From assembly GCF_006345805.1 (NCBI RefSeq), contig NC_043010.1, positions 59,520,001 to 59,584,000 on the forward strand: a stretch of DNA of 64,000 nt. Direction: 5' to 3'. Both the position numbers and the translations under genes were made by a program. Below the pieces are notes generated by a model. It saw nothing but the letters and a program-made list of their open reading frames with translations. It was not told where the DNA came from and ran no database searches. Below are positions 7,082-33,245 of the stretch, piece by piece (position 1 is the first letter of the stretch; every line of letters begins with the position of its first letter). This stretch comes from Octopus sinensis (Eukaryota).

Positions 7082-7083
<2 letters not shown>

Positions 7084-8112: not shown

Positions 8113-10512
8113 ATGAACAAATTGTGTTCTCCTTATCCCTGGATACTGTCAAGAACAGAAATGTTATGTCTGTATGTATTACTGACTTTCTTTCACTTTT
8201 CCCTAAGTGAAGATATCACATACCATGTTGAAGAAGAGAATAGTCCCTATACCTATGTAGGGGACATTGCTACTGACTTACAGAAATCAGACAGCTCCTT
8301 AAAGAATAAGGATTTGATTACATTTAGTCAACTGCAACAAAAGGGAGAACAGTTGTTCAATGTGACAAGAACAGGCAAACTGTACACTGTTGAGACATTG
8401 GATGCTGAGTCTGTGTGTCGTTATGAGAAAGAATGTTTTGAAATCGTTAAAGTTGCTGTTCACAAATCCAAGACATTTATGAAGATCTTAAAGATTAAAG
8501 TCATAATAGAAGACATCAATGACCACCAACCTGAGTTTCCAACTGAAGAAGTCAACATTCAGTTTTCTGAAACAGATGGCAAAGGCACGAAAAGATCAAT
8601 ACCCAATGCTGTTGATAAAGATATGGGTTATCAAAATAATTTAATTAAGTATGAATTAAAAGAGGATAATGAACATTTCTCTTTATTAGTTGCCAAACAA
8701 GCTGATGGCATATCATCATTAGAAATTATTTTAGAAGATAAATTAGACAGAGAAAAGAAGGACAATTATGATATTGAGATCATTGCTAAAGATGGGGGAA
8801 CTCCACCAAAACAATCTGTTTTAAATGTGAAAATATCTGTAAAAGACGAAAATGATAACAGACCACAATTTTCTCAAAGTATCTACAATGTCTCTATTGA
8901 ACATAAACATAAAAAGAATATTCCAGTCGTCACATTATCTGCCAGTGATTTAGACATTGGCAGGAATGGTAAAATATCTTTCTATTTTAGTCAGAAAACT
9001 GATGAAACGATAAAAGAATACTTTCATTTAGATGAAAGTACTGGAAAGTTATTTCTTGAAAAACCTATAAATTTTGGTAAGAAAGAATCATTTAAATTAT
9101 ATGTGAAAGCCAAAGATAATGGAATTCCTCCTCTGAGTTCCATTGCAATAATTCAGATAAATGTTATCAACCAACACAACAATCCCCCAAATATTGATGT
9201 GAACTTTATTTCTACACAGAATCACAACACAGCTACCATTCTGGAAGACATCAAAGTTGGTAGTTTCATTGCTTATGTGATGGTCACTGACAATGATGTT
9301 GGACACAATGGACAGGTGAACTGTCATATCAAAGACGACACATTCAAACTACAGTCAATGGGATCGAAGGAATATAAAATAGTTCTAAAGAAAGCAGTAG
9401 ACAGAGAGACACAGGAACATTATCACTTTACTGTGTCGTGTGAAGATAAAGGATTACCTGCTCTGAAAACTGATAAAGATCTGTCAATCCAAGTGTTAGA
9501 TGTGAATGATGTAGAGCCACACTTTACGAAAGACACATTCAAGTTCCTTACCTATGAGAATGACAAAGCTAATTTCCCTATTGGCTTTATCAATGCTACA
9601 GACCCAGATATTGGTAAGGGAGGTGAATTGTCTTATTCTCTGAGAAATAAACAGCAATATCGTCTGCCATTCCAGATTATCAACTCTGGCTTTATTTCAA
9701 CAAACCAGTCTTTAGACAGAGAGCACAGAGATTTCTATGAGTTTGAGGTTTTTTGTGAAAGACAATGGAAGCCCATCTCTGAATAACACAGTGAATGTTG
9801 AAGTGGAAGTATTGGATAGAAATGATAATGCTCCATATTTTACATTTCCTAGTGTTGACCCTTTCACTCTTAATGTCCACTATCATCCGCAAAGTAAGAA
9901 CGACATCACAGTTCTGAAAGCATCTGATATAGACAGTCACATGAATGCTTTTCTCAGGTATGAAATCGTTTCAGGTAACGAGAGACAGTTATTTAAACTG
10001 GATTCGTTCACTGGTGTGTTATCTTACTCTCGCACAGTTTACCAAAATGATGCCGGATCATATGAGCTTGAGTTTGTTGTGAAAGACAGTGGTACTCCAG
10101 TTCTGTCAGCAACAACTAGTGTGTCTTTGACACTGACTGTTAGTAACAAGACGTCACCAATGTTCACAGCTGTGCACCTACCAAGTGATAACACCATAGA
10201 TGCGACATTGTTGATTATCATTGTAGAGCAGCTGTGATAGTATCTATAGCTATTGTGGTTTCTATAACCCTGTGTATTGTGAGATGTAACAATGTGAGAA
10301 ATAGCTCATCTGAAAGAACAGCAGAAGAGAAACAGGCATACCAATGTCGCAATGAGATGAGACAGTTGATCTATCAAGGTAACAACAGTGTACCTGTGAT
10401 GTCAGGTAATCGAGGAGAGATGTCAGAGAGATATGGTCATTCAAGGAGCCATTACTATCCTGAAGACTGGAAGACATCGACAATGAGCAGAAGTTTACCA
10501 AAAAGTATGAAG
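8113..10512 (+). CDS. PCDH: Protocadherin P2 large exon (EC1-EC6, TM); two 1-nt indels (T6 at 9749-9754; missing t near 10227), probably assembly errors
   Basis: ttttgtttcag acceptor, ORFs 8104-9786, 9737-10237 and 10234-10536 join into a full protocadherin; donor AAG|gtatgt 10512/10513. Confidence 0.92.
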
Positions 10513-10748
10513 GTATGTTTTAAGATTTTCTGTTGATAATTCTATAATTATTTACTGAATAATAATAAATGTTATTTATAGTCTTCATCTGTAACTTGTT
10601 AGGTTGTTTCTTTCTTCATATTTATTTTAGTTCAATAACCCAAATGGTGATTTTTATTATAGAATGCACAGATTTTATAAAATTTTTAATGTAATATATT
10701 TTTCAAAATTACAATGAGAGATGAAACAACTTTTTACTCTAACAGCAG

Positions 10749-10899
10749 AAATACAGTCAACCCATTGAGGTGACATCTTATGGAGACAGCAGACCATCTT
10801 CTAACTATCCCACTGACACATTGACCAGTCGTAAGAGTAGTGGACAGTGCTGGAGTGAGCGGTCAAGCAGACAGTATGAAGAAATACCAGCAATGTCAG
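10749..10899 (+). CDS. PCDH: P2 exon 3
   Basis: aacagcag acceptor (alt 10746), 151 nt, G|gt. Confidence 0.9.
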
Positions 10900-11329
10900 G
10901 TAGGATAACAATCTCATTCATTCTTGTTGTCATTAATTTTATTATAATTTTATTTCTAGAATATCTAATTTTAACTGTTCTGAAATACTTTTTCGTTATT
11001 GATCATCATTAGCATTATTGCTCTTGTAATCCTTGTTATCATCTTCTTGTTTGAATGCCCTTCCTATTGCCACTCACTTTGCAATGTGTATTGGATGCCT
11101 TTTTCATGGCACCAGTGAGGTTTCCATGTAGCTTGCAAAACTAAGGTTCCCATTGACTGAGTGAGCCCACAGAAGAGGTGAAGGCAGCTCTACGCTCAGT
11201 GGTGAAAGGTGAGCATATGAGGGAAGACAGTGAAACAGATTTCTTGCTGCAGAGGAGATACATGGCTGCTCACATCATACAAGAATGGCTGGGAGTAATC
11301 AGTGTATTCATCCAATCTGATCCTGCATA

Positions 11330-11812
11330 TAATTATTGGGTCACTGATCTGATTATGATCTGAAAGGATCTTAGGGTCGGTAAAACACAACATATATTAT
11401 ATGGCAGTGAAACTTGGGCGCTGACAAAGAAATGATCCAAGTGGCTAAATGGGTGCTATACAAGAATGCTATGAATAGCCCCAAATGTGAAATGGCAGCA
11501 ATAGATGACAAATGAATGCTTTTATGGAGACCTGCGAAAAGTTAGCGAGAAGATCAGGCAAAGACAGCTGTGACTATTTGGTCAATGTTTGTGCCACACT
11601 AAAGTGGAAGCATCCAAATTAGTCTTGTAGAACCCTTTTCATGGTGATGTAAGAAGAGGAAAACATTGTCACATTTACTTTGACAACTTGATTGCAGACA
11701 CTGGCCTGGAATATACCCAGGACCATGAGACAATGAAGATGGACCGAGAAGTGTGGCTGATGGACTTTGTTGCTATGGCCTGGGTTGGAACTCGGCCATA
11801 ATAATAATAGTA
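11330..11812 (+). mobile_element. RTE-clade LINE fragment (segmental-duplication copy of 4440-4927)
   Basis: Near-identical sequence at an offset of ~6.88 kb. Confidence 0.8.
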
Positions 11813-11948
11813 AACTTTTCTTTGTTAATTGTTATTTCATAGCTTAATCAAATTAATGTAACAAAAAGAGATTTGTTACTAATGTCACAGAATACCTATT
11901 GTCTGTATGAACTATGTAGTAAGTTTGGTTGATGTATATGTGTTTCAG

Positions 11949-12070
11949 GAATCTATGGTGGTGCCCCACCGGATGTATCAAGCACCAGTGAGAGAGACCA
12001 TTACCAAGACAGATATGTGAAACCTCCAGAGAGACAGTTACCTTCAACACCAGATGTTGTTGTCAGTTAA
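11949..12070 (+). CDS. PCDH: P2 terminal exon 4
   Basis: tgtttcag acceptor, 122 nt to TAA. Confidence 0.9.
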
Positions 12071-12490
12071 GTGAGACTGAGAAAGGAACACAACAGAAAT
12101 AATATCACCTTCAACATTCACACAACATTTAAAACAACAGAAATATGTTAGTTAGTAAATAATATTGCCCACATATGACTGAAATATTTTGTATGTGTGT
12201 CACACAATATATCATGTATATATATTTTGGGTTGAAAAATTTAACAACTTTAGATATGAACAATCAATGTATAACTGTATAGTAAGGCAAACCAAAGTTA
12301 AGAAAAATATTTTGATCAATTATAATTAGATGACTCCCTTGTTGAAGGACAATTCAGATTGAAAATATAAATTGAATTGTTCTGTATATCTATAATAACG
12401 TACTAAATCAAATTATAAATCTTTACACTCAGAAAGTATATTATACATGGATTACATATCATTTTCAAATTTTCAGTGTATATCCTAATG

Positions 12491-13035
12491 GAGAGAGTTG
12501 GTTTAGAAATAGGTCAGACATACACACACTAACTGTTATTGTCAATATTGTATTTACATTTTAAATTACACAAACATTAACAACATCAGCCATATTTTGT
12601 TAATATAACCTCTCTGTTCTAAGGATTTCTATGTCAGTCTCTCTCCACATCAGACATGTTGGTGTTATATAGACTTATCATGGCTGACTGTTAGTGGAGC
12701 TGATAGTTTGTTGTCCCTCTCTTTTCATTGTGAGGGAAAACACATCAAGTCTGAGTGAGGCTGGAGTAAGCATCACCCATCTCTCCTCCTCTCTCTGTCT
12801 GTTTGTCTCTCTCTCACTCACACCCATGCACACACTCACTAAACACCACCCATCCACAGAGGAAGACTTGAGAGGGAACTGCTGGTTCCCACTGACTCAC
12901 CACCAACACTATTCCATCAACATGAAGCCATTGTCACACCATAGCAGCAGTGACACAGACAACCATTAACAACAGAACATTGGGACCAAGTCACAGTTTA
13001 TACAACAAAGGATTTTACACACAATGAGGGTAAGT
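12491..13035 (+). promoter_or_regulatory. Promoter core plus leader exon 1 of P3
   Basis: Same conserved block; ATG AGG 13024-13029, GTAAGT at 13030. Confidence 0.7.
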
Positions 13036-14872
13036 CTATCATTCCCTATTATTTGTCCAATGATGTGAAATGAATCATGTCATATACAGCTATATTGTAA
13101 AGCCAAAAGTAATATTCTGATGGTGGCCATATTAGATCTGTCTTTGTTCTCTCTTAGAAGTAAATTCATTAAGTTCTTATTTTTGAGTTCAATAACCGTT
13201 AAATGTAAATAACTTATTTATTGTAAGATACTGTATAATAGGTGATTTTATTTAATGTTACTTAATACTCAAGCAAAATATACTCTGTTACATTCGTTAA
13301 AGTCTAAAGTATTCACCTTTAACATTGTCTCATTTTAATGGAATTATGCACAAATATAAAGAAGAACAGGTTTCCTTTCTATAGTTTATTATTTGCTTAA
13401 CACTACACTTGTTTATTCTAAGTGGATTAATTGTTCATGTATTAAATAAATGAGTGAAGTTATGAATAATCATTGTTTTAGTGAATTCTTATTGTGTAAG
13501 CATATTTGCAAAATATTGAAATTGTAGTGAGACTTGACATAGATGTTATGAAAAATGGCATATATTATTTTTGAGAGGAGATTTATTGAATTGAAAATGT
13601 CGCACATATTTTATGATCTGTGTAGAATATATAAATCTGAATTGCTTAGCATTAAGCCTATGATATGGTATCATTACTGTATAATATGGATTATAATATC
13701 GAACAGATTTAAATCTCTAATTTTATTAACAGAATGGGACTCATTAAAATTATGAAATTTTTACTATTCTTCGTTTAATACCCTAGTTATGATATTGCTT
13801 TCAACATTGTCTTGATATGATATAAGGTGTATACAGTAGAATTAAACTTTTTTCTACAATAAATTATGTAATTTCTATGAAGTGTGTGTGAGTGAGTGTG
13901 TGTGTGTGTGTGAGTGAGAATGTGTATGTGTGTGTGTGTGTGTTGAAGGGAGACAATTCTAAACTCCACTATTTCGGATGTAATCATTTCTGTTTCAGTA
14001 ATTCCTTGTTTTGGCATTTTTCTTTTTATTAAAATCTGATTCTAATTCAATAGTTATAGTTTTAAGTTTTCACATAAAATACATATCATACATGTTGTGG
14101 TTTGCTTCAGTTTTCCGTAGAAATCCATCTAAAATTGGTAACTACTATCTCATTTGCAGTTACAATTTATGTGATCTATCTTAGTACTAGATATGAGCGT
14201 GCTTACTTCAGACATTTATCTGAAATTAGTTGCCTCTGCTATGTTAAATCTCGTCAGTTGACCAAAATATAAATACTAGAATTTCTTCTGCGAGCTAAAA
14301 TGTATAAAAAGAAAGTTAAAATAAATGTGCTAATGTAAATAGATCATTTCAAAAAACAATTCTACAAATACATCGTATTATAAATTGTGTAAGCTTTGTT
14401 CTTTTCAAGTGTCTGTTACAGTACAAACAAATTGATGTGTCCTACCCACTGTACCCAATCCTCTGTACCAATTATATACTCCTCCCTGTAGCTTTACTTC
14501 CTGACACAACTTCATCATCTCCTCTCCCTCTCTTCTCTTTTCCTAGCTAAAGTAGACATGTACCTCCTCTACTGTAAGACACCTGTTTTTGTCCCTCTGT
14601 CATTCTCTAACCTCTCACCACATGGAACAAAGCCATTTCCATCAATACTACTTCTCCAACTCAGTTGAGGGGTCTTGTCTTACTAGGTACTTGGTGACAT
14701 CTAAGAACTACCCAGTATGCTCTAAAATGGTTGGTGTTAGGAAGGGCATCTAGCTATTGGAACTATGTCAGAGCAGATGGTTGAGCTTGGTGCAGTCTTC
14801 TGCCTTGCTACCTACTGTCAAGTACCAACATGAAATGTGGATGTTAAATGATAATGTTTTCATGAATGTAAA

Positions 14873-14907
<35 letters not shown>

Positions 14908-14956
14908 ACTGGAGTCTATTCACTTTTTGTTAATCTCCTAATTAATTTTGTTTCAG

Positions 14957-17358
14957 ATGAACAAATTGTGTTCTCCTTATCCCTGGATACTGTCAAGAAC
15001 AGAAATGTTATGTCTGTATGTATTACTGACTTTCTTTCACTTTTCCCTAAGTGAAGATATCACATACCATGTTGAAGAAGAGAATAGTCCCTATACCTAT
15101 GTAGGGGACATTGCTACAGACCTACAGAAATCAGACAGCTCCTTCTTAAAGAATAAGGATTTAATTACATTTAGTCAACTACAACAAAAGGGAGAACAGT
15201 TGTTCAATGTGACGAGAACAGGTAAACTGTACACTGTTGAGACATTGGATGCTGAGTCTGTGTGTAGTTATGAGAAAGAATGTTTTGAAATCGTTAAAGT
15301 TGCTGTTCACAAATCCAAGACATTTATGAAGATCTTAAAGATTAAAGTCATAATAGAAGACATCAATGACCACCAACCTGAGTTTCCAACTGAAGAAGTC
15401 AACATTCAGTTTTCAGAGAGAGATAGTAAAGGATCAAAACTATCAATACCCAATGCTGTTGATAAAGATATGGGTAATAAAAATAGTTTAATTAAGTATG
15501 AATTACATGACAACGAAGGGCAATTTTCATTAAGTGTTTCTAAAGAAGCAGATGGAATTTCCACTTTAGAAATTATTTTAGAAGATAAATTAGACAGAGA
15601 AAAGAAGGACAGTTACAATATTGAAGTCATTGCTAAAGATGGAGGAACTCCACCAAAACAATCTGTTTTAAATGTTAAAATATCTGTGGAAGATGAAAAT
15701 GATAATAAACCACAATTTTCTCAAAGTATCTACAATGTTTCTATAGAACATAAACATAAAAAGAATATTCCAGTAGTCACATTATCTGCCAATGACTTAG
15801 ATATTGGCAGGAATGGTAAAATATCTTTCTATTTTAGTCAGAAAACTGATGAAAAAATAAAAGAATACTTTCATTTAGATGAAAGTACTGGGAAGTTATT
15901 TCTTGAAAAGCCTATAAATTTTGGTAAGAAAGAATCATTTAAATTATATGTGAAAGCCAAAGATAATGGAATTCCTCCTCTGAGTTCCATTGCAATAATT
16001 CAGATAAATGTTATCAACCAACACAACAATCCCCCAAATATTGATGTGAACTTTATTTCTACACAGAATCACAACACAGCTACCATTCTGGAAGACATCA
16101 AAGTTGGTAGTTTCATTGCTTATGTGATGGTCACTGACAATGATGTTGGACACAATGGACAGGTGAACTGTCATATCAAAGACAACACATTCAAACTACA
16201 GTCAATGGGATCGAAGGAATATAAAATAGTTCTAAAGAAAGCAGTAGACAGAGAGACACAGGAACATTATCACTTTACTGTGTCGTGTGAAGATAAAGGA
16301 TTACCTGCTCTGAAAACTGATAAAGATCTGTCAATCCAAGTGTTGGATGTGAATGATGTAGAACCACACTTTACGAAAGACACATTCAAGTTCCTTACCT
16401 ATGAGAATGACAAAGCTAATTTCCCTATTGGCTTTATCAATGCTACAGACCCAGATATTGGTAAGGGAGGTGAATTGTCTTATTCTCTGAGAAATAAACA
16501 GCAATATCGTCTGCCATTCCAGATTATCAACTCTGGCTTTATTTCAACAAACCAGTCTTTAGACAGAGAACACAGAGATTTCTATGAGTTTGAGGTTTTG
16601 TGAAAGACAATGGAAGCCCATCTCTGAATAACACAGTGAATGTTGAAGTGGAAGTATTGGATAGAAATGATAATGCTCCATATTTTACATTTCCTAGTGT
16701 TGACCCTTTCACTCTTAATGTCCACTATCATCCGCAAAGTAAGAACGACATCACAGTTCTGAAAGCATCTGATATAGACAGTCACATGAATGCTTTTCTC
16801 AGGTATGAAATCGTTTCAGGTAACGAGAGACAGTTATTTAAACTGGATTCGTTCACTGGTGTGTTATCTTACTCTCGCACAGTTTACCAAAATGATGCCG
16901 GATCATATGAGCTTGAGTTTGTTGTGAAAGACAGTGGTACTCCAGTTCTGTCAGCAACAACTAGTGTGTCTTTGACACTGACTGTTAGTAACAAGACGTC
17001 ACCAATGTTCACAGCTGTGCACCTACCAAGTGATAACACCATAGATGCGACATTGTTGATTATCATTGTAGTAGCAGCTGTGATAGTATCTATAGCTATT
17101 GTGGTTTCTATAACCCTGTGTATTGTGAGATGTAACAATGTGAGAAATAGCTCATCTGAAAGAACAGCAGAAGAGAAACAGGCATACCAATGTCGCAATG
17201 AGATGAGACAGTTGATCTATCAAGGTAACAACAGTGTACCTGTGATGTCAGGTAATCGAGGAGAGATGTCAGAGAGATATGGTCACTCGAGGAGCCATTA
17301 CTATCCTGAAGATTGGAAGACGTCAACAATGAGCAGAAGTCTTCAAAAGTCCACAAAG
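14957..17358 (+). CDS. PCDH: Protocadherin P3 large exon; one 1-nt deletion (T4 at 16596-16599), probably an assembly error
   Basis: ORFs 14948-16603 and 16600-17403; acceptor tttcag 14956; donor AAG|gtaagt 17358/17359. Confidence 0.93.
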
Positions 17359-18227
17359 GTAAGTCTTATTCCAATTATCAATCTTGCAGTATATAGCATT
17401 TAATTAAAAATGATCAAGTTTATTAATTTATATCAGAATCACTGTTCCTTGATGATTGGTAGTATTTAATTTCCAAATGTATTTAATATGAAATATGCCA
17501 TGTTGAAAAATTACTTTTGTGATGTATTGATGAGAAATACATTTTGCCCTGCGCATGTTACAAGTTATTTGATGTTTAATGAATCTCTAGCAATTCTACC
17601 ACAACAAGAATCAAAGATGCTTTCATACGTTGTAGGTTATGAATCTCTTTAATCACAGTCAAAAATGAGTAGACTTAGTAATGAGTTGACATAGATATTG
17701 TTGAAATTGTTTACAGCTATGTGCACTGTCTGAGTGAGAATTCAAGGTATATAGCGTGTGTGCATGTGTAGGTTCAAATAGGGTAATAGGAAACAATTGA
17801 CTGAGAATTGGAAGTTGTCTTGATATTTTTCAGTTTTCTCACTTTATATAAAGTTAAGTTAATCCTTTAATGCCTCTGTTTCAATTCATCTCATGATAAA
17901 TGTATCTGGACGTTAATAGTAGACAATTACGGTTTTGATTCTTTATCGAATATGTACACTTCTTTTAATATGGAGTGATCACTAATTTCACTAGTGTCAT
18001 CATTGAGTTTTTAGTAATTTCTCTCTTGTTTTATCTTGGAACATTGTCATATTTCAAATAAATTACCTTGTATAAGCCTGTGTTACATTTTACTAATTGA
18101 AGTGATAAATGCACAAGCTGCCCTATTTTATCAGACAGAAACTATTTTATTCAATATTAGATATAGGACTGTCAGTCATAAATGTTATCTGTATAATATG
18201 TCTTGTTACTATTGTATTTTACAGCAG

Positions 18228-18378
18228 AAATACAGTCAACCCATTGAGGTGACATCTTATGGAGACAACAGACCATCTTCTCACTATCCCACTGACACAT
18301 TGACCAGTCGTAAGAGCAGTGGACAGTGCTGGAGTGAGCGGTCAAGTAGACAGTATGAAGAAATACCAGCAATGTCAG
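18228..18378 (+). CDS. PCDH: P3 exon 3
   Basis: ttttacagcag acceptor (alt 18225), 151 nt. Confidence 0.9.
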
Positions 18379-18677
18379 GTACAACACTTTCGTTTACCTA
18401 TCTTAATTGGTATATTTGTCATTTTCCCCAATGATATCTTTTGGAGTGAGCCCTAAACGAACACTATGATAATTTTATTTATTAGTTTAATTGTCATTTG
18501 ATGTGCTGAAGTTTGTACAGATCTATTGTATAGTGAGGTATTAATCCCTGTATAATAGTTGTTTTGTAGATTATTGCATAGAAGAGAAGAGAATATTGAC
18601 CAAAGCCTGTCAGTAAATACTTATTGTCTTTATGTACCATACGATAAGTTCAGTTGATGTATATATGTGTGTTTCAG

Positions 18678-18799
18678 GAATCTATGGTGGTGCCCCACCC
18701 GATGTATCAAGCACCAGTGAGAGAGACCATTACCAAGACAGATATGTGAAACCTCCAGAGAGACAGTTACCTTCAACACCAGATGTTGTTGTCAGTTAA
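18678..18799 (+). CDS. PCDH: P3 terminal exon 4
   Basis: gtttcag acceptor, 122 nt to TAA. Confidence 0.9.
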
Positions 18800-18998
18800 G
18801 TGAGACTGAGAAAGGAACACAACAGAAATAATATCACCTTCAACATTCACACAACATTTAAGACAACAGAAATATATTAGTTAGTAAATAATATTGCCCA
18901 CATATGACTGAATATCTTTGTATGTGTTTGAGACAAAGTATTTGAAATGTGTACATCTGGGGTAGGTTTCTGCAGATAAAACTGATATAGCATCAATT

Positions 18999-19122
18999 AA
19001 TAATAATAATAATAATAGTAATAATAATAATTGTGTACAGTGCTCAGGTGCACTACAACTCATCTAAAGTGTATATATAATCAGGTGTAGTTTCGGCGGA
19101 TTTCTGAAAGCATGAGGGCCTT
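18999..19122 (-). mobile_element. Severely 5'-truncated CR1-like LINE 3' end with (TTA)n tail
   Basis: Matches 47161-47277; absent from the duplicated sister region near 27360. Confidence 0.8.
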
Positions 19123-19342
19123 GTTCTGATTAATCAATTCACAACACTCTATTGTTAGGTAAACGAAAGGTAAATGCAATATTGGAAGAAATCATTGATA
19201 TATATTCCTCCCAGTGAAGTAAAGTTTGACATTAAAAAATGTTTTCAAGAAATTAATATCAACAACTTTATGATGTAAAATGCCTCCATTACATTTTAAA
19301 TATAAATATAGTTTACATGGCAGCCTTAAATTTGCTAAAAAG

Positions 19343-19869
19343 GAGATTTAGTTTAGAATTAGGTCAGACACACACTAACTGTTATTGTCAATATTGTATT
19401 TACATTTTAAATTACACACACATTAACAACATCAGCCATATTTTGTTAATATAACCTCTCTGTTCTAAGGATTTCTATGTCAGTCTCTCTCCACATCAGA
19501 CATGTTGGTGTTATATAGACTTATCATGGCTGACTGTTAGTGGAGCTGATAGTTTGTTGTCCCTCTCTTTTCATTGTGAGGGAAAACACATCAAGTGTGA
19601 GTGAGGCTGGAGTGAGCATCACCCATCTCTCTTCCTCTCTCTGTCTCTCACTCACACCCATGCACACACTCACTAAACACCACACATCCACAGAGGAAGA
19701 CTTGAGAGGGAACTGCTGGTTCCCACTGACTCACCACCAACACTATTCCATCAACATGAAGCCATTGTCACACCATAGCAGCAGTGACACAGACAACCAT
19801 TAACAACAGAACATTGGGACCAAGTCACAGTTTATACAACAAAGGATTTTACACACAATGAAGGTAAGT
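19343..19869 (+). promoter_or_regulatory. Promoter core plus leader exon 1 of P4
   Basis: Conserved block; ATG AAG 19858-19863, GTAAGT at 19864. Confidence 0.7.
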
Positions 19870-20459
19870 TTATTGTTCAATATTATTTATTCAAATTACG
19901 TGAAATAATGATTTCATATGTAGCCTTCCTGTAATATCAAAATATAATATTCTGATGGTGGCCATATTAGATCTGTGTCAGTTCATATTGAATGTCTTCT
20001 TTTCAGACATGGCTGTTGAATATTTTGATAACAGCTCTAGGAAAAGAAAAACTGTTTAGGAATATAATGTCCATTATTTCAATATACTATATTTTTAATG
20101 TTCCCAGGTTTTCATGTACTTGTTTCCTTATTCTTATCTAGTTTCTTCTAAATGATTGTGTACTGATAAATTGATACAGACATTTTATAGGAATTTCTCT
20201 GAAATATCTCGGTGGCAGACTATTTCCATATGTATGAAATTATAGTAATAATATAATAAAATATATTATAAAACTAACATTTGACTGTGTAGTAACAAGA
20301 AAGAAAAGTATGAATAAAAATTGATATGGATATTGTTGTATGTATTTTTATGTGTTTTATGATGTTTAAGTGTGTGTGTGTGTGTTTGTTTGTCTAAATA
20401 CATTAATTGGTTAATTTCTGTATATCTCGTCTTGTATCATTATTACTTCTTTCATTTAA

Positions 20460-21155: not shown

Positions 21156-22482
21156 TATCCTTGCCATTACTATGTTATTGCAATATAACTGGAACTGAAT
21201 GATAGATACTGTAATATAAAAAGGCCATATTGATTGATAATGATTTAATTTTATGGTTGAAAAGTGAATATTTGTTTGGTTTCCATAACTTCATTTCACT
21301 AAATGACTTTTCTAAATTTGTCATTTAAATAGCTTCTAGTTTATATCTTCTCTTTTCTGGAATATCTGCTTCTTAATATTATCATAGTGTTATGTGAATG
21401 ATGACCAGATGTCCATCTTTGGTGCCATTATAACCGTCAGACAACTTGTATGTGGTTTGAATTTATATTTTGTTTTTCATCTCTTCTGTTTTATTAGAAT
21501 TGTTGTAACCACATATTCCTGTCTTCAACTTTACCCTTTCCATGTCTGACAATGGTTTCCTGACTATTACATTATTTGTAGTATACTAATATTTTTTAAA
21601 CAATGTCACATCAACAAATATAGTTTTATCAGTAATTAATGTACAATAAAACAACAGAACAACATTGAATTTATTGCACACATGCACAAATACACTCTTC
21701 CCCACTTATGTATTCTACTGTGTTCTTGTGAATTACGTCGAGTTATTTGCAGAACGGCGTTACCGATAATTATTTTACATATATTTACATTTTCATTCGG
21801 GGACCAAAGAAATAAGAGAAACTCAATGCAAAATAATTTCGTTTGCTGGTGGTAATCCTGTTCAAGGGAGCGAACTCAATTTCGGCTGTATAACTGAAGG
21901 AAACATTATTTTCCCATTAGGCTATAAACAAAATGTTTAATTATTTTGTCATATTTTATAATTCTTCGTGAAGTATGTAATGTCTATGTTGAAGTGTCAG
22001 CAACTTGTATAATTTTTTTTTAATCAGTTAATTATTTTGAGAGTATGGGAATATGGTGGTTATTATCTTTATGAAGTTTGGACAATTGGAGCAGTTTTAT
22101 AATGAATATAACTTTGAACAATATTCTATAAGATTAATTACAATTAATTATTAGAATAAGAAACTGGGCTGTTTAAGTAGTCACAAGTTATCTGCCTTAT
22201 GAGAAGAACCTGTTAAATCATATGAATTAATTGTCCAAATTATTGCCTTCTCATTATTATTGCAAAGACAATTCCAGATAAGTAAAGATCTTCAACTTGC
22301 CATAAAATATATGGCAGACAATGTATATTTAGTGAGCAGTAAGTTCCCCCTGGGATACTTTACTTCAGTCCTACTTTTGGTATGTTTTCTTATTAGAAGG
22401 AGATTATTTATTCATTACTAAAATAGTTTTCACAAAATATTTTAAATTTCTTCCCATTACAAGCTATCTATTTATTTTACAG

Positions 22483-24885
22483 ATTAATAATGTGAATCTG
22501 CCAAATTCCTGGACATCACGACCAGAGATGCTGTTGTGTCTCTGTATTTTATTGACTTTTTCTCATTGTTATTCAAGTGAAGATATCACATATCATGTTG
22601 AAGAAGAGAATAGTCCCTATACCTATGTAGGGGACATTGCTACTGACCTACAGAAATCAGACAGCTCCTTCTTAAAGAATAAGGATTTAATTACATTTAG
22701 TCAACTACAACAAAAGGGAGAACAGTTGTTCAATGTGACGAGAACAGGTAAACTGTACACTGTTGAGACATTGGATGCTGAGTCTGTGTGTAGTTATGAG
22801 AAAGAATGTTTTGAAATCGTTAAAGTTGCTGTTCACAAATCCAAGACATTTATGAAGATCTTAAAGATTAAAGTCATAATAGAAGACATCAATGACCACC
22901 AACCTGAGTTTCCAACTGAAGAAGTCAACATCCAATTTTCAGAGAGAGATGGTAAAGGATCAAAACTATCAATACCCAATGCTGTTGATAAAGATATGGG
23001 TTATAAAAATAGTTTAATTACATATGAATTAAAAAAGGAAGATCAGTATTTCTCTTTACTAGTTGCCAAACATACTAATGGAATATTAACATTGGGAATT
23101 ATTTTAGAAGAGAAATTAGACAGAGAAAAGAAGGACAGTTACAATATTGAAGTCATTGCTAAAGATGGAGGAACTCCACCAAAAGAATCTGTTTTAAATG
23201 TTAAAATATCTGTAAGAGATGAAAATGATAATACACCTCTCTTTTCGCAAAGTATTTACAATGTCTCTATTGAACATAAACATAAAAAGAATATTCCAGT
23301 CGTCACATTATCTGCCAGTGATTTAGATATTGGCAGGAATGGTAAAATATCATATTACTTTGCCAGGAAAACTGCTGAGAAAATGAAGAGACATTTTAAT
23401 TTAGATGAAAATACTGGGAAATTATATTTAGCTACATCTTCAGAAATTGATAAGGATGAATCTTTAAAATTATACATTGAAGCCAGAGATGATGGCAGTC
23501 CTCCACTGAGCTCCGTAGCAATAATTCAGATAAATGTTATCAATGAACACAACAATCCCCCAAATATTGATGTGAATTTTATTTCTACACAGAATCACAA
23601 CACAGCTACCATTCTGGAAGACATCAAAGTTGGTAGTTTCATTGCTTATGTGATGGTCACTGACAATGATGTTGGACACAATGGACAGGTGAACTGTCAT
23701 ATCAAAGACAACACATTCAAACTACAGTCAATGGGATCGAAGGAATATAAAATAGTTCTAAAGAAAGCAGTAGACAGAGAGACACAGGAACATTATCACT
23801 TTACTGTGTCGTGTGAAGATAAAGGATTACCTGCTCTGAAAACTGATAAAGATCTGTCAATCCAAGTGTTGGATGTGAATGATGTAGAACCACACTTTAC
23901 GAAAGACACATTCAAGTTCCTTACCTATGAGAATGACAAAGCTAATTTCCCTATTGGCTTTATCAATGCTACAGACCCAGATATTGGTAAGGGAGGTGAA
24001 TTGTTTTATTCTCTGAGAAATAAACAGCAATATCGTCTGCCATTCCAGATTATCAACTCTGGCTTTATTTCAACAAACCAGTCTTTAGACAGAGAACACA
24101 GAGATTTCTATGAGTTTGAGGTTTTTGTGAAAGACAATGGAAGCCCATCTCTGAATAACACAGTGAATGTTGAAGTGGAAGTATTGGATAGAAATGATAA
24201 TGCTCCATATTTTACATTTCCTAGTGTTGACCATTTCACTCTTAATGTCCACTATCATCCGCAAAGTAAGAACGACATCACAGTTCTGAAAGCATCTGAT
24301 ATAGACAGTCACATGAATGCTTTTCTCAGGTACGAAATCGTTTCAGGTAACGAGAGACAGTTATTTAAACTGGATTCGTTCACTGGTGTGTTATCTTACT
24401 CTCGCACAGTTTACCAAAATGATGCCGGATCATATGAGCTTGAGTTTGTTGTGAAAGACAGTGGTACTCCAGTTCTGTCAGCAACAACTAGTGTGTCTTT
24501 GACACTGACTGTTAGTAACAAGACGTCACCAATGTTCACAGCTGTGCACCTACCAAGTGATAACACAATAGATGCGACATTGTTGATTATCATTGTAGTA
24601 GCAGCTGTGATAGTATCTATAGCTATTGTGGTTTCTATAACCCTGTGTATTGTGAGATGTAACAATGTGAGAAATAGCTCATCTGAAAGAACAGCAGAAG
24701 AGAAACAGGCATACCAATGTCGCAATGAGATGAGACAGTTGATCTATCAAGGTAACAACAGTGTACCTGTGATGTCAGGTAATCGAGGAGAGATGTCAGA
24801 CAGATACGGTCATTCGAGGAGCCATTACTATCCTGAAGACTGGAAGACATCGACAATGAGCAGATCACTTCAGAAGTCTACAAAG
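22483..24885 (+). CDS. PCDH: Protocadherin P4 large exon, intact (EC1 22579-22911, EC2 22912-23244, EC3 23245-23568, then EC4-EC6, TM)
   Basis: 817-aa ORF 22492-24945; acceptor ttttacag 22482; signal ATG 22528; EC1 Cys-X5-Cys (CSYEKEC); donor AAG|gtaagc 24885/24886; exon length 2403 (multiple of 3). Confidence 0.97.
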
Positions 24886-26552
24886 GTAAGCCTTATTTGG
24901 ATTGAGTGTTTGTTAGTAGTTAATGTTCAATTAAGAAGTATTTGAATAGAAGACATCGACAGTGAACTGAAGTTTGCCAAAAAGCATGAAAATATGTATT
25001 AATCTTCTATTTCGGTATTCTCTTAAATCTCCTCTGGATAACAACTTCATTTATACTTTTAGTGTAATCTTTATATTTTCATAAATATAGTTTTAGATAT
25101 TATTTCCATAATTATTATCCAACAATGTCTGTATAACATTATCAATTGTGTATTTCATCTGTTTTGTTTGGTTTTGAAGTATTCAGTGTTCTTCAACGTA
25201 TGTCTTAAAGAAACTTTCCATGGATGAAATCCTGTGACTTGTAACTCTTCAAACAAAACACATATATTAAGTTTGTGACATCAATTATGTTTATAGTATT
25301 AGAGCTGCTTCTAATTCAGAATTTAGTTTCAGTTTATTTTGTACTCTTTTAGAATTATGAGTTAAGAGTAGAAATTGTTATTTCTGGTATGTTATGTTGC
25401 TCATCTACACCAGTCTGCGATATTTTATTATTGTTTGACTGTAACGACATTCAATATTTAAATAAATCATTACACTGGCATATAAATATACAAGTTTTTT
25501 TTTTCTGTTGCATAAGGGTTTGGTCCAGATGTAGGGCCTGTGTCCTTGACCCTCACAATTGAGGTTAATGTAGCTTATTCTCTTGAATAATTAATTACTA
25601 GTATAAAACAGCTGGAGAAGTATGGGAATAGAGTGAATTTCAGTGGGGAAGATGTTCTGAGGCAGAAAGATTAAGTGGTTGTTGTAGGGTACAGAAAGGC
25701 TGGCAATACGATTGACTAGAGGAGAAGAGATGAGTAAGCTGAGTCGCCCAGGGTGGGACCTCTGAGAGTCGAGGCTTCTGTAAGTGAAGGTAGAAAAGCA
25801 GAGTCAAAGTGATATGGTCCATCAATATATGGAGATGCAACATAACTGGAAGAATGAACATATAGATTGTGGCTATCCTGTCCTTTTTCTAAAAATAATG
25901 GATCTAAGACCACTACTTCTTGTAAGGAAACAAAGAATATTTTGTGAGTGTTTTAGGTTGAATAGAAGCTTCTTGAGTTGTGTTTGTGTGAAGTTTTTAT
26001 CAAAATCCTCGAATCTAATGATCTCACATGCCTTGACCTATAAAGCTGAAATGTTATCACTGCTACTTCACACACAAACATCCTTGATTTTTAATTAATG
26101 TTAAATAGTTAATATTTCATGAGGTATCCTCCTTTCTTGGCAATAATTTATCATTATGGCACTTATTTCTTCTCGTCAATAGATGTGTAGTTATAATTAT
26201 CTAAAATCTCTGAGCTACCTTCTGCATCTTAGTGTTGACTTGAAAAATTTTCAAACAATGTTTCTTTTAGTGATCAGTGAAGACTCACTAAGCAATGCAC
26301 TAACCTCTGCGTCTGAGATGTTCCTTCTCATTTCTTCTTCTCTTACCACTGCCATGGACTCTTTCTATGAATAGCTTGCTGAAAATGAAAACTCATTCCA
26401 GTCTCAAAACTTTTACTGTGGTCTCCTCTCCCATATCTCACACTAACCTTTTTCCCTAACCTTTACACCCCAAAACAGTAAGCATCCAGAATTCCCAAAT
26501 GTTTTTCTTGGACAAATCAAGTCATTGTTGTTTTTGTTTTCTTTAACAGCAG

Positions 26553-26703
26553 AAATACAGTCAACCCATTGAGGTGACATCTTATGGAGACAACAGACCA
26601 TCTTCTCACTATCCCACTGACACACTGGCCAGTCGTAAGAGCAGTGGACAGTGCTGGAGTGAGCGGTCAAGCAGACAGTATGAAGAAATACCAGCAATGT
26701 CAG
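26553..26703 (+). CDS. PCDH: P4 exon 3
   Basis: tttaacagcag acceptor (alt 26550), 151 nt. Confidence 0.9.
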
Positions 26704-27042
26704 GTAAAACAATTTCATTTATCCATCTTAATTGGTGTGTTTATCATTTATCCCATTGATATATCCGGGAGTGAAGTCTAAACAAACACTAGGATTTTGA
26801 GGACTTCCAAAATGTTATTTCTAATAGTTTTATCACTATGAATTAAATTTATAGATTAAAAGTGTAAATCTCTTTTTATTTATTAGTTAATTGTCACGTA
26901 ATATGCTCAACATTGTATAGGTCTAATCGTATAGTGAGGTATTAATCCCTTTATAATAGTTATTTTGTAGAGCATTTAATATGAAAGAAGGAAAAGTTGA
27001 CTAAAGTCAATCGTTGAATACCCATTGATATATATGTTTCAG

Positions 27043-27164
27043 GAATCTATGGTGGTGCCCCACCCGATGTATCAAGCACCAGTGAGAGAGACCATTATCA
27101 AGACAGATATGTGAAACCTCCAGAGAGACAGTTACCTTCAACACCAGATGTTGTTGTCAGTTAA
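27043..27164 (+). CDS. PCDH: P4 terminal exon 4
   Basis: gtttcag acceptor, 122 nt to TAA. Confidence 0.9.
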
Positions 27165-27587
27165 GTGAGACTGAGAAAGGAACACAACAGAAATAATATC
27201 ACCTTCAACATTCACACAACATTTAAAACAACAGAAATATTTTAGTTAGTAAATAATATTGGCAACATATGACTGAATATCTTTGTATGTGTTTCAGACA
27301 AAGTATTTGAAATGTGTACATCTGGGGCAGGTTTCTGCAGATAAAAACTGATATAACATCAATTGTTCTGATTAATCAATTCACAACACTCTATTGTTAG
27401 GTAAACGAAAGGAGGTAAATGCAATATTGGAAGAAATCACTGATATATATTCCTCCCAGTGAAGTAAAGTTTGACATTAAAAAATGTTTTCAAGCAATAA
27501 ATATCAACAACTTTATGATGTAAAATGCCTCCATTACATTTTAAATATAAATATAGTTTACATGGCAGCCTTAAATTTGCTAAAAAG

Positions 27588-28116
27588 GAGATTTAGTTTA
27601 GAATTAGGTCAGACACACACACACTAACTGTTATTGTCAATATTGTATTTACATTTTAAATTACACACACATTAACAACATCAGCCATATTTTGTTAATA
27701 TAACCTCTCTGTTCTAAGGATTTCTATGTCAGTCTCTCTCCACATCAGGCATGTTGGTGTTATATAGACTTATCATGGCTGACTGTTAGTGGAGCTGATA
27801 GTTTGTTGTCCCTCTCTTTTCATTGTGAGGGAAAACACATCAAGTGTGAGTGAGGCTGGAGTGAGCATCACCCATCTCTCTTCCTCTCTCTGTCTCTCAC
27901 TCACACCCATGCACACACTCACTAAACACCGCACATCCACAGAGGAAGACTTGAGAGGGAACTGCTGGTTCCCACTGACTCACCACCAACACTATTCCAT
28001 CAACATGAAGCCATTGTCACACCATAGCAGCAGTGACACAGACAACCATTAACAACAGAACATTGGGACCAAGTCACAGTTTATACAACAAAGGATTTTA
28101 CACAATGAAGGTAAGT
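27588..28116 (+). promoter_or_regulatory. Promoter core plus leader exon 1 of P5
   Basis: Conserved block; ATG AAG 28105-28110, GTAAGT at 28111. Confidence 0.7.
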
Positions 28117-28706
28117 TTATTGTTCAATATTATTTATTCAAATTACGTGAAATAATGATTTCATATGTAGCCTTCTTGTAATATGAAAATATAATATTCT
28201 GATGGTGGCCATATTAGATCTGTGTCAGTTCATATTGAATGTCTTCTTTTCAGACATGGCTGTTGAATATTTTGATAACAGCTCTAGGAAAAGAAAAACT
28301 GTTTAGGAATATAATGTCCATTATTTCAATATACTATATTTTTAATGTTCCCAGGTTTTCATGTACTTGTTTCCTTATTCTTATCTAGTTTCTTCTAAAT
28401 GATTGTGTACTGATAAATTGATACAGACGCTTTATAGGAATTTCTCTGAAATATCTCGGTGGCAGACTATTTCCATATGTATGAAATTATAGTAATAATA
28501 TAATAAAATATATTATAAAACTAACATTTGACTGTGTAGTAACAAGAAAGAAAAGTATGAATAAAAATTGATATGGATATTGTTGTATGTATTTTTATGT
28601 GTTTTATGATGTTTAAGTGTGTGTGTGTGTGTTTGTTTGTCTAAATACATTAATTGGTTAATTTCTGTATATCTCGTCTTGTATCATTATTACTTCTTTC
28701 ATTTAA

Positions 28707-28909
28707 GGCAGGGAACTGGCTGAATCATTAGCATGCCAGATGAAATGCTTAGTGGCATTTTGGCTGTCTTTACATTCTGAGTTCAATTTCCACCAAGGCC
28801 AACATTACCCTTCATCTTAATGGGGTCAGTTATACAAGTGCCACTTGAACACTGGGGTTGATGTAAATGACTAGCTCCCTATCCCCAAATTTCAGGCCCT
28901 GTGCCTACA
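28707..28909 (+). mobile_element. SINE, duplicated copy of 20460-20661
   Basis: Near-identical at an offset of ~8.25 kb. Confidence 0.75.
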
Positions 28910-30842
28910 ATAGTAAAGATTATTAGTCCTTCCATTTATAAATTTCAAATTCATCTACCTAGGATTCTTTCTAGGCTAATGAACCACACCTGATGTGTGA
29001 AACCTAAAAAATTATTGGTATGATATTCATCATAATCGGATATTTTAAAAAATGTCATCTCAAGCATGTCCTCTATCAATTTAGTGTAGAGTTGTTTTAC
29101 AAAATTTTTAAAAAATAGTCACTTGTAATTTTTTGTGAAGTTATATTATACACTAATTACTTATAGAACCATATTTGTTGATCTGACATCGTTTAAAAGA
29201 TATTAGTATACAACACATAATGTTACATCCATGAAAAAGCATTGTCAGACAGAGGCATCAATGTCATGTAGCATTGGGGCATGGAACAGGTAAAGGTTAA
29301 GACAGGAATATGTCACATCAATAAATATAGTTTTACCAAGCTTTAGTGTAGAATGTAACTTCCAAAAAAATTACAAGTGGTTGGTGTTAGAAAGGGCATC
29401 CATCTGTAAAAATCCTGCCTAAACAGTCACAGAAGTCTGGTGCAGGCTCTTGTGGTACCATCCCACCCGTGCTAGCATGGAAGATGGACGTTATAAACGA
29501 TGATGAGGATGATGATATCATCCTTGCCATTACTATGTTATTGCAATATAACTGGAACTGAATGATAGATATTGTAATATAAAAAGGCCATATTGATTGA
29601 TTATGATTCAATTTGATGGTTGAAAAGTGAATATTTGTTTGGTTTCCATAACTTCATTTCACTAAATGACTTTTCTAAATTTGTCATTTAAATAGCTTCT
29701 AGTTTATATCTTCTCTTTTCTGGAATATCTGCTTCTTAATATTATCATAGTGTTTTGTGAATGATGACCAGATGTCCATCTTTGGTGCCATTATAATCGT
29801 CAGACAAATTGTATGTGGTTTGAATTTATATTTTGTTTTTCATCTCTTCTGTTCTAGCAGAATTGTTGTAACCACATATTCCTGCCTTAAACTTTACCCT
29901 TTCCATGTCTGACAGTGGTTTCCTGAATACTACATTATTTGTAGTATACTAATATTTTTTAAACAATGTCACATCAACAAATATAGTTTTATCAGTAATT
30001 AATGTATAATTTAACAACAAAATAACATTGAATTTATTGCACACATGCACAAATACACTCTTGCCCACTTATGTATTCTACTGTGTTCTTGTGAATTACG
30101 TCGAGTTATTTGCAGAACGGCGTTACCGATAATTATTTTACATATATTTACATTTTCATTCGGGGACCAAAGAAATAAGAGAAACTCAATGCAAAATAAT
30201 TTCGTTTGCTGGTGGTAATCCTGTTCAAGGGAGCGAACTCAATTTAGGCTGTATAACTGAAGGAAACATTATTTTCCTATTAGGCTATAAACAAAACGTT
30301 TAATTATTTTGTCATATTTTATAATTTTTCGTGAAGTCTGTAATGTCTATGTTCAAGTGTCAGCACCTTGTATAATTTTTTTTTAATCAGTTAATTATTT
30401 TGAGAGTATGGGAATATGGTGGTTATTATCTTTATGAAGTTTGGCAAATTGGAGCAGTTTTATAATGAATGTAACTTTGAACAATATTCTATAAGATTAA
30501 TTACAAATTAATTATTAGAATAAGAAACTGGGCTGTTTAAGTAGTCACAAGTTATATGCCTTATGAGAAGAACCTGTTAAATCATATGAATTAATTGTCC
30601 AAAATATTGCCTTCTCATTATTATTGCAAAGACAATTCCAGATAAGTAAAGATCTTCAACTTGCCGTAAAATATATGGCAGACAATATATTTAGTGAGCA
30701 GTAAGTTCCCCCTGGGATACTTTACTTCAGTCCTACTTTTGGTGTATTCTTATAAGAAGGAGATTATTTATTCATTACTAAAATAGTCTTTCACAAATTT
30801 TTTTTATTTCTTCCCACTACAAGCTATCTATTTATTTTACAG

Positions 30843-33245
30843 ATTAATAATGTGAATCTACCAAATTCCTGGACATCACGACCAGAGATGCTGTTGTGTC
30901 TCTGTATTTTATTGACATTTTCTCATTGTTATTCAAGTGAAGATATCACTTACCACGTTGAAGAAGAGAATAGTCCCTATACCTATATAGGGGACATTGC
31001 TACTGACTTACAGAAAGCAGACAGCTCCTTCTTAAAGAATAAGGATTTGATTACATTTAGTCAACTGCAACAAAAGGGAGAACAGTTGTTCAATGTGACG
31101 AGAACAGGTAAACTGTACACTGTTGAGACATTGGATGCTGAGTCTGTGTGTAGTTATGAGAAAGAATGTTTTGAAATCGTTAAAGTTGCTGTTCACAAAT
31201 CCAAGACATTTATGAAGATCTTAAAGATTAAAGTCATAATAGAAGACATCAATGACCACCAGCCTGAATTTCCAACTGAAGAAGTCAATATTCAATTTTC
31301 TGAAACAGATGGCAAAGGCACGAAGAGATCAATACAAAATGCTGTTGATAAAGATATGGGTTATAAAAATAGTTTAATTAAGTATGAATTAAAAAAGGAA
31401 AATCAGTATTTCTCTTTACTAGTTGCAAAACATACTAATGGAATATCAAGATTGGGAATTATTTTAGAAGATAAATTAGACAGAGAAACAAAAGACAGCT
31501 ACAATATTGAAGTCATTGCTAAAGATGGGGGAACTCCACCAAAACAATCTATTTTAAATGTTAAAATATCTGTGGAAGATGAAAATGATAACACACCTCT
31601 CTTTTCGCAAACTATCTACAATGTCTCTATAGAACATAAACATAAAAAGAATATTCCAGTAGTCACATTATCTGCCAGTGATTTAGATATTGGCAGGAAT
31701 GGTAAAATATCATATTACTTTGCCAGGAAAACTGCTGAGAAAATGAAGAGACATTTTAATTTAGATGAAAATACTGGGAAATTATATTTAGCTACATCTT
31801 CAGAAATTGATAAGGATGAGTCTTTAAAATTATACATTGAAGCCAGTGATGATGGCAGTCCTCCGCTGAGCTCTGTAGCAATAATTCAGATAAATGTCAT
31901 CAATGAACACAACAATCCCCCAAATATTGATGTGAATTTTATTTCTACACAGAATCACAACACAGCCACCATTCTGGAAGACATCAAAGTTGGTAGTTTC
32001 ATTGCTTATGTGATGGTCACTGATGATGATGTTGGACACAATGGAGAGGTGAACTGTCATATCAAAGACGACACATTCAAACTACAGTCAATGGGATCGA
32101 AGGAATATAAAATAGTTCTAAAGAAAGCAGTAGACAGAGAGACACAGGAACATTATCACTTTACTGTGTCGTGTGAAGATAAAGGATTACCTGCTCTGAA
32201 AACTGATAAAGATCTGTCAATCCAAGTGTTGGATGTGAATGATGTAGAACCACACTTTACGAAAGACACATTCAAGTTCCTTACCTATGAGAATGACAAA
32301 GCTAATTTCCCTATTGGCTTTATCAATGCTACAGACCCAGATATTGGTAAGGGAGGTGAATTGTCTTATTCTCTGAGAAATAAACAGCAATATCGTCTGC
32401 CATTCCAGATTATCAACTCTGGCTTTATTTCAACAAACCAGTCTTTAGACAGAGAACACAGAGATTTCTATGAGTTTGAGGTTTTTGTGAAAGACAATGG
32501 AAGCCCATCTCTGAATAACACAGTGAATGTTGAAGTGGAAGTATTGGATAGAAATGATAATGCTCCATATTTTACATTTCCTAGTGTTGACCCTTTCACT
32601 CTTAATGTCCACTATCATCCGCAAAGTAAGAACGACATCACAGTTCTGAAAGCATCTGATATAGACAGTCACATGAATGCTTTTCTCAGGTATGAAATCG
32701 TTTCAGGTAACGAGAGACAGTTATTTAAACTGGATTCGTTCACTGGTGTGTTATCTTACTCTCGCACAGTTTACCAAAATGATGCCGGATCATATGAGCT
32801 TGAGTTTGTTGTGAAAGACAGTGGTACTCCAGTTCTGTCAGCAACAACTAGTGTGTCTTTGACACTGACTGTTAGTAACAAGACGTCACCAATGTTCACA
32901 GCTGTGCACCTACCAAGTGATAACACAATAGATGCGACATTGTTGATTATCATTGTAGTAGCAGCTGTGATAGTATCTATAGCTATTGTGGTTTCTATAA
33001 CCCTGTGTATTGTGAGATGTAACAATGTGAGAAATAGCTCATCTGAAAGAACAGCAGAAGAGAAACAGGCATACCAATGTCGCAATGAGATGAGACAGTT
33101 GATCTATCAAGGTAACAACAGTGTACCTGTGATGTCAGGTAATCGAGGAGAGATGTCAGACAGATATGGTCATTCGAGAAGCCATTACTATCCTGAAGAC
33201 TGGAAGACGTCAACAATGAGTCGGACACTTCAGAAGTCTACAAAG
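30843..33245 (+). CDS. PCDH: Protocadherin P5 large exon, intact
   Basis: 817-aa ORF 30852-33305; acceptor 30842; ATG 30888; donor 33245/33246. Confidence 0.97.

Follow-up and report, generated by a model that had tools for sequence, protein, structure and literature searches.

How do neighbouring genes of one family come to carry the same sequence segments in different combinations? The question is raised by a 64-kb stretch of Octopus sinensis DNA (assembly GCF_006345805.1, NC_043010.1, positions 59,520,001 to 59,584,000; hereafter the window, with coordinates counted from its first nucleotide). Its plus strand carries eight tandem large exons of ~2.4 kb, denoted P1 to P8, from protocadherin (Pcdh) genes that are part of a longer chromosomal array. 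An earlier reading of the sequence had proposed that four of these genes, P2 to P5, form a complete two-by-two set of EC2 patches and EC3 cores, created by the exchange of short tracts between paralogues (hereafter the original prediction). We found that the set is real and that the paralogues exchange sequence. The array probably evolves in concert by ordinary germline ectopic recombination, with EC2-EC3 as mosaics.

The EC2 patch was found in two forms, denoted T and R. The T patch (SETDGKGTKRS) is located in P2 (8566..8598) and P5 (31299..31331); all features are on the plus strand unless stated otherwise. Its DNA sequence, TCTGAAACAGATGGCAAAGGCACGAA(A/G)AGA, starts at 8566 and 31299 and is found again, with one mismatch, at 58946 in P8. 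The R patch, TCAGAGAGAGAT(A/G)GTAAAGGATCAAAACTA, is located in P3 (15413..15445, SERDSKGSKLS) and, with GGT, in P4 (22939..22971, SERDGKGSKLS), where it corresponds to the minimal converted tract. Shuffled sequence contained no T or R patch matches. The two forms differ at 9-10 of 27 nucleotides, with no fewer than four of the differences being silent (TCT/TCA, GAA/GAG, GGC/GGT, and GGC/GGA). The synonymous sites co-vary with the patch form, as had been claimed. Individual copies also have private states: GGC..AAA in P2, GGC..AAG in P5, and GGT..AAA in P8, with AGT in P3 versus GGT in P4. The translations of the EC3 cores agree with the proposed types, B in P2 (8979..9172) and P3 (15826..16019) and C in P4 (23352..23545) and P5 (31712..31905).

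We analyzed the 93 informative sites among P2 to P5. The grouping (P2,P3)(P4,P5) is supported by 73 sites, (P2,P5)(P3,P4) by 16, and the third grouping by 4. Nine of the 16 discordant sites form an unbroken run at alignment columns 531-557 (P2 8568-8594), and a run of nine was seen in 0 of 200,000 shuffles of the site order (p ~5e-6). These nine consecutive sites bear out the pairing of P2 with P5 and of P3 with P4 at the patch. The pairwise homoplasy index (PHI) of the eight genes was 0.344, compared with a permutation mean of 0.485±0.012 (p<5e-4). For P2-P5 alone it was 0.189 compared with 0.379±0.018 (p<5e-4). The index thus lies more than 10 standard deviations below the permutation mean. 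Incompatible pairs made up 47% of the informative site pairs. A single tree for all sites is thus rejected. The Hudson-Kaplan minimum number of recombination events (Rm) was 13 for P2-P5 and 44 for P2-P8, values that we use only qualitatively because multiple hits at a synonymous divergence (dS) of ~0.5 inflate Rm. Shared fragments were assessed with a test modelled on Sawyer's run-length test. We did not rely on the run found in EC1 (columns 236-520) because all copies are near-identical in EC1, which confounds the fragment test.

The grouping changes along the genes with the geometry of a non-crossover exchange. The leader (columns 150-162) and 5' flank give the grouping (P2,P3)(P4,P5), and so does the stretch from the EC3 core to the 3' flank. 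The patch between them groups (P2,P5)(P3,P4). Within EC2, the sisters diverge by 18% per 200 nt (P2-P3) or 7-8% (P4-P5), compared with 1-4% in the noncoding flanks, and the EC2 dS is 0.47 and 0.33, respectively. The far greater difference in EC2 than in the flanks shows that the EC2 differences were imported and did not accumulate in place. Donor-like sequences match even at silent sites. Across the patch, P4 has one difference from P3, while P3 has none from V3 and P5 none from V1, V1 and V3 being two of the five genes (V1-V5) at an Octopus vulgaris locus (L002) in an independent assembly. The patch is a real difference between sisters, as proposed, but not the only one: the whole of EC2 differs, and some of the donors are located outside the window.

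The sister pairs had been defined by their introns. Both pairs stand, on different grounds. P4 and P5 are duplicates of a whole unit (19121-27301 and 27363-35662) and are 97-98% identical. P2 and P3, in contrast, have different introns (intron 1, 234 versus 867 nt; intron 2, 1050 versus 300 nt), the introns of P2 being those of P1. Their kinship is based on the 5' flank and exon 1, which are common to P2 and P3 within a 6845-bp repeat (1206-10494 versus 8051-17340). The repeat stops at the end of P3 exon 1, and the 3' end of P2 exon 1 (LPKSMK) matches P1. This boundary is the footprint of an unequal crossover.

To place the patch in the context of the whole gene, we compared divergence across domains. 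Among P2-P8, the mean dS was 0.11 in EC1, 0.54 in EC2, 0.51 in EC3, 0.04 in EC4, 0.013 in EC5, 0.023 in EC6, and 0.105 from the transmembrane segment to the cytoplasmic start, a difference of ~40-fold between EC2 and EC5. The nonsynonymous divergence (dN) of EC2 was 0.14. The homogenised EC4-EC6 block of P4 is located at 23563..24580, and the same block differs by only 0.4-1.1% on average in every paralogue. The DNA just beyond exon 1 is ~45% different between copies, which indicates that the near-identity of EC1 and EC4-EC6 is due to homogenisation and not to recent duplication. The same profile was found in V1-V5, with differences of 21% in EC2, 19% in EC3, and 0.0% in EC5. We also compared the positional matches P6 with V4 and P7 with V5, which differ by 6-9% in EC2-EC3, ~3-4% in the noncoding flanks, and 0-0.3% in EC5. 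Even when sister species are compared, the variable domains thus evolve more rapidly than the neutral flanks.

Nearest-relative painting in sliding windows resolved EC2-EC3 into a mosaic of ~50-150-nt blocks. Among 17 paralogues, linkage disequilibrium (LD) was r2 0.28 at distances of up to 10 nt and reached background within ~25-100 nt, with values of 0.09-0.10 beyond ~100 nt. The E-type EC3 core (columns 955-1075), which is carried by a gene elsewhere on the chromosome (C1) and by a gene on an unplaced contig (Hb2), is itself a mosaic of types C, B, and D in blocks of 25-60 nt. Its AEKMKR part resembles type C, YFHLDKSTGK resembles type B, and IFL..SLEVDTKNSLKLYIEA resembles type D.

The patch types are also found in other species. 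Proteins of O. bimaculoides and Argonauta hians contain T and R as well as a further type, G (GEGDGKGMKK), and so these types are old. Across three Octopus species, the T patch is combined with core B (P2), C (P5 and V1), D (O. bimaculoides), or E (C1), and the R patch with core B (P3), C (P4 and O. bimaculoides), D (V3), or E (Hb2). Patch and core are thus widely re-paired, with four cores for each patch. Two unplaced contigs of the O. sinensis assembly were also compared with the chromosome. VCDQ01002625.1, which carries Hb2, is collinear with the C1 locus at 94-99%. Both have the same E core, but the contig combines it with R and the chromosome with T. This T/R difference may represent a segregating tract. 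VCDQ01002615.1 matches window positions 26440-50315 with 0 mismatches over 37.1-44.3 kb and 46.7-48.8 kb and with 2-4% differences elsewhere. In place of P4 and P5, this contig contains only one gene (Sa1), which is V2-like, with a G patch and an F core. The difference points either to haplotype polymorphism in copy number and cassettes or to a duplicate made in assembly. The sequence P0132 (G patch, B core) had been considered as the gene at the P5 position on an unplaced contig and was rejected, since the DNA shows Sa1 there and P0132 is the next gene upstream.

We then traced the candidate sources of each patch. The O. vulgaris genes V0 and V1 are collinear with P1 and P2 (96% over 10.5 kb), and the DNA downstream of V1 matches that of P4. 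V1 combines a P2/P3-type leader, the T patch of P5, a P4-like EC2, and a C core; its 5' side is orthologous to P2/P3 and its body to P4/P5. This composition, together with the collinearity, suggests that the T patch reached P2 through a V1-like 5' half and P5 through the body. The T patches of P2 and P5 would thus most simply be inherited from one V1-like ancestor. The original prediction had counted the sharing of this patch as an exchange; as a conversion fragment, the P2-P5 shared run is not significant (p=0.09), and descent from a V1-like gene fits better. The R patch appears to be the derived state, as the P4 patch has 10 differences from V1 and 1 from P3. P3 is identical to V3 over columns 475-600, patch included. 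P3 then continues with a segment that has no relative among the sequences compared, becomes P4/V2-like, and is P2-like from the EC3 core onward. For this middle segment (15476..15565), even the nearest sequence among the window genes and the other loci compared has 13-18 differences per 50-60 nt, which places the donor outside this set. The EC2 of P2 matches the gene elsewhere on the chromosome (C1/Hb2).

The length of the tract transferred into P4 depends on a few marker bases. P4 keeps three bases of the C lineage, an A that lies 6 nt 5' of the patch (22935) and a CA on its 3' side (23021-23022). If these markers are trusted, the R tract would be 27-85 nt long; if not, it would be up to ~355 nt. 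The flanks are identical in all four genes, so the 33 nt of the proposed micro-tract are a lower bound only. Short blocks as such are seen in the decay of LD and in the E core mosaic, and that part of the proposal holds; the 33-nt micro-tract is only partly borne out. A less likely alternative is one conversion of ~355 nt between P3 and P4 (P4 22648-23001, P3 15122-15475) followed by three point changes, with no micro-tract at all. The patch would then be the only variable stretch within the tract, and the marker bases would be later changes or the result of patchy mismatch repair. P3 and P4 are adjacent genes, P3 is the nearest sequence to P4 over columns 210-570, and their identity extends in two runs, columns 236-520 (31 polymorphic sites, p=0.0002) and columns 543-591 (26 sites, p=0.0014), separated by 3 mismatches. 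However, the first of these runs is inflated by the near-identity of all copies in EC1, its markers C-A-A are also present in V1 and so may reflect ancestry, and the A at 22935 is the state of P5 and V1, not that of P3. With either tract length, the two-by-two set needs at least two exchange events.

Taken together, these observations are best explained by a tandem Pcdh array whose copies would evolve in concert through interlocus gene conversion and through unequal crossing-over when neighbours misalign. In all copies, EC1 and the stretch from EC4 to the cytoplasmic start are kept near-identical, and we infer that these long identical stretches serve as homology anchors. In the diverged EC2-EC3, only tracts of tens to ~100 nt would be fixed, which would leave mosaics of a few old segment types. 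The T patch of P2 and P5 would come from one ancestral gene that is still single in O. vulgaris (V1). The R patch would be an old alternative form, present in O. vulgaris (V3), O. bimaculoides, and Argonauta, that was copied into P3 with its flanks and into P4 as the tract discussed above. By analogy with vertebrates, EC2 and EC3 probably set homophilic specificity, and new EC2/EC3 pairings may be kept by selection.

Several points weigh against this explanation. The direction of transfer into P4 and the limits of its tract hang on three bases (22935 and 23021-23022), and apart from these the P4 flanks are uninformative. V1, the reference for the ancestral state, has itself been altered and is P8-like over columns 562-612. 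The decay of LD, like Rm, is inflated by multiple hits at a dS of ~0.5. The assembly contains indel errors, and the two unplaced contigs may not be alleles of the chromosome sequence. The exact pairings of P2, P3, and P4 have no independent read or transcript confirmation: no record with the exact P4 reading frame was found in public assemblies, and a protein search with P3 EC2-EC3 for independent contigs combining R and B returned only 13 distant short proteins. An event-by-event history of P2-P5, attempted with O. vulgaris and the unplaced contigs, was not recovered, there being too many overlapping exchanges and differences in copy number.

A more elaborate form of the explanation, which we consider unlikely, gives selection a central role. 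It holds that old T, R, and G cassettes of the EC2 A-B loop, which predate the Octopus-Argonauta split, have been repeatedly re-paired with EC3 cores by short-tract conversion, and that the pairings were selected for new homophilic specificities. The array would then be an evolutionary diversifier resembling the major histocompatibility complex (MHC) and convergent on the vertebrate partition into EC1/EC4 affinity and EC2/EC3 specificity. In MHC class I and II genes, micro gene conversion re-assorts old motifs of tens of nucleotides in the recognition region, with synonymous sites carried along, and de novo conversion events have been observed directly. The octopus Pcdh genes are similar to this motif shuffling, although they belong to another protein family with another function and the octopus case is a comparative inference only.

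It is very improbable that the pairings are chimeras made during assembly or polishing by misassignment of reads between paralogues. The genes are ~99% identical over 1.2 kb, and the assembly has visible faults. The frame of P2 is broken twice, in a T6 run (9749) and by the loss of 1 nt (10226), and P3 and P7 each have a frameshift, the former at a T4 run at 16595 and the latter at 52664. One T5 run has six T in P2 (T6) and four in P3 (T4), a pattern more like homopolymer error in long reads than two separate mutations. The indels in P2, P3, and P7 may have arisen in assembly, given that its unplaced contigs are also frameshifted. However, each patch has a private silent state, and so none is a copy of another gene in the window. 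The patch-plus-flank haplotypes of P5 and P3 recur exactly in the independent O. vulgaris assembly, which also shows the same mosaic statistics, and the block of nine mismatches is close enough to unique EC2 sequence for one long read to cover both. P1 exon 1 is the most disrupted copy, with more than 15 single-base indels relative to the others and repeated loss of frame. Its O. vulgaris orthologue V0 (MKILKIKV anchor at 5464 of locus L005) is intact, the frame staying open over all 250 codons that were translated, which extend from the last part of EC1 to EC4. P1 exon 1 is either a pseudogene or a poorly polished stretch.

The original prediction had described the array as a germline module-shuffling diversifier. 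The analysis does not bear out a purpose or a dedicated mechanism, as ectopic recombination in a tandem array gives such a pattern. A programmed system, with targeted breaks in the EC2 loop or somatic conversion in neurons that swaps cassettes, is scarcely credible. The T/R alternative does occur on four EC3 backgrounds with apparently the same borders, and the cassette types are old. However, sharp borders are to be expected in any case, since the identical flanks of the T and R carriers hide the tract ends. The mosaic breakpoints are spread throughout EC2-EC3, and nothing found here in germline assemblies, such as signal sequences or a bank of donor pseudogenes, indicates a dedicated mechanism. 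Parallel substitution under selection on the EC2 loop, without any exchange, has in its favour that this loop is exposed on a domain that probably determines binding specificity and that dN is high in EC2, but it is effectively refuted by the synonymous differences that co-vary with the replacements, as well as by the identity of P3 with V3 and of P5 with V1 at every site and the clustering of the discordant sites.

These findings can be compared with other recognition systems. Gene conversion in vertebrate clustered Pcdh genes (Noonan et al. 2004; Wu 2005) leaves dS highest in EC2/EC3 and lowest in EC5/EC6 (PMC4978886), and EC2/EC3 encode homophilic specificity while EC1/EC4 provide non-selective affinity (PMC5001838). 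The octopus genes are similar in that they are tandem paralogues with homogenised membrane-proximal and cytoplasmic parts and diverse specificity domains. Octopus and vertebrate Pcdh expansions are independent, so the resemblance is convergent. There are two differences. In vertebrates, splicing joins each variable exon to constant exons common to the cluster; the octopus genes have their own exons 2 and 3 (PMC9068888). In addition, vertebrate EC2-EC3 have been described as escaping conversion, whereas in octopus EC2-EC3 are themselves re-assorted in short blocks. The homogenisation of EC1 and EC4-6 with diverse EC2-EC3 in both lineages suggests that octopus protocadherins may bind one another by the same antiparallel EC1-4 contact, EC2/EC3 being the part that determines specificity. 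Insect Dscam1, with its alternative exon cassettes, also has combinatorial recognition modules in a homophilic neuronal receptor. Dscam1 combines its modules in each cell by alternative splicing, whereas the octopus combinations are fixed in separate germline genes over evolutionary time.

For cephalopod Pcdh arrays, conversion has been proposed in general terms for near-identical clustered copies (PMC9068888; Styfhals et al. 2019, PMC6339937). In the searchable literature we found no domain- or tract-level account of the split between EC1/EC4-6 and EC2-3, or of the re-assortment of patch and core. The useful additions here are the convergent domain partition and short-block shuffling within EC2-EC3; the mechanism is an ordinary one, known from vertebrate Pcdh clusters. 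Most of the gene loses its divergence through conversion, and in the remainder the divergence is reshuffled, and so the published dates of the octopod Pcdh expansion (65 and 8-14 Ma; PMC9795677) and gene trees based on whole sequences are unreliable. P2-P5 also provide natural swaps of patch and core for testing EC2/EC3 specificity.

The assignment of the window genes to the protocadherins (cadherin superfamily, with six EC repeats, a transmembrane segment, and a short tail) is supported by sequence similarity. Their relatives are named protocadherin, with Pfam domains PF00028/PF08266, and the top solved-structure matches are protocadherins (6vg1, 1.5e-88; gamma-A9 5szn, 5e-80), aligned over EC1-EC4. 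The anchor motif EDITYHV, near the start of EC1, was found at 1363, 8209, 15053, 22579, 30939, 39323, 51777, and 58586. The first unit of the 6845-bp repeat contains the degraded exon 1 of P1 (1206..3654). P2 exon 1, from the leader to the cytoplasmic start, is located at 8104..10512 and P3 exon 1 at 14948..17358. The reading frames of P4 exon 1 (22492..24885) and P5 exon 1 (30852..33245) are intact. Exon 1 of P6 (39164..41629) has a G-type patch with a C core, that of P7 (51726..54082) a G-type patch with an H core, and that of P8 (58481..60892) the T patch already described with a D'-type core.

Each large exon, P1-P8, is followed on its 3' side by its own 156-nt exon 2 (QKYSQPIEV...), and P1-P7 also have their own exon 3 downstream (IYGGAPPDV...); for P8, exon 3 was not found up to the window end. 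The pair belonging to P3, for example, is located at 18225-18380 and 18680-18796. The copies are thus complete three-exon genes and not variable exons that feed shared constant exons, and a vertebrate-type arrangement of shared constant exons was rejected. The RefSeq protein XP_029645412.2 (68.4-Mb chromosome, CM016872.1) is exactly P4 fused to P5, with P4 exon 1 as its first half, and XP_036365285.1 begins with P6 and a P7 that is spliced internally, and also includes the 5' part of P8 and the apparent body of a further gene. RefSeq models therefore fuse adjacent genes (22492-35523 and 39164-60937), and models in the array are fused or truncated. Owing to this fusion of neighbours, family counts taken from that annotation are off.

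A block of ~650 nt, 85-95% identical between copies, was observed at 5601-6254, 12482-13151, 19343-19976, 27588-28223, 44543-45209, and 55672-56376. It is located ~0.4-0.8 kb past the end of the exon-3 coding sequence (VVS/VAS C-terminus) of P1, P2, P3, P4, P6, and P7. No copy was seen downstream of P5, where the duplication unit stops at 35662. The block is probably a shared 3' untranslated region or a repeat. In the unusually long spacer between P6 and P7, a 97-aa open reading frame (ORF) on the minus strand (47234-47527) may resemble the C-terminal end of a non-LTR (long terminal repeat) retrotransposon protein, as judged by eye, and such an element may account for the 12.5-kb spacing of these genes. 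A 175-aa ORF with a run of nine histidines, on the minus strand at 61178-61705 and antisense to P8 exon 2, is probably spurious.

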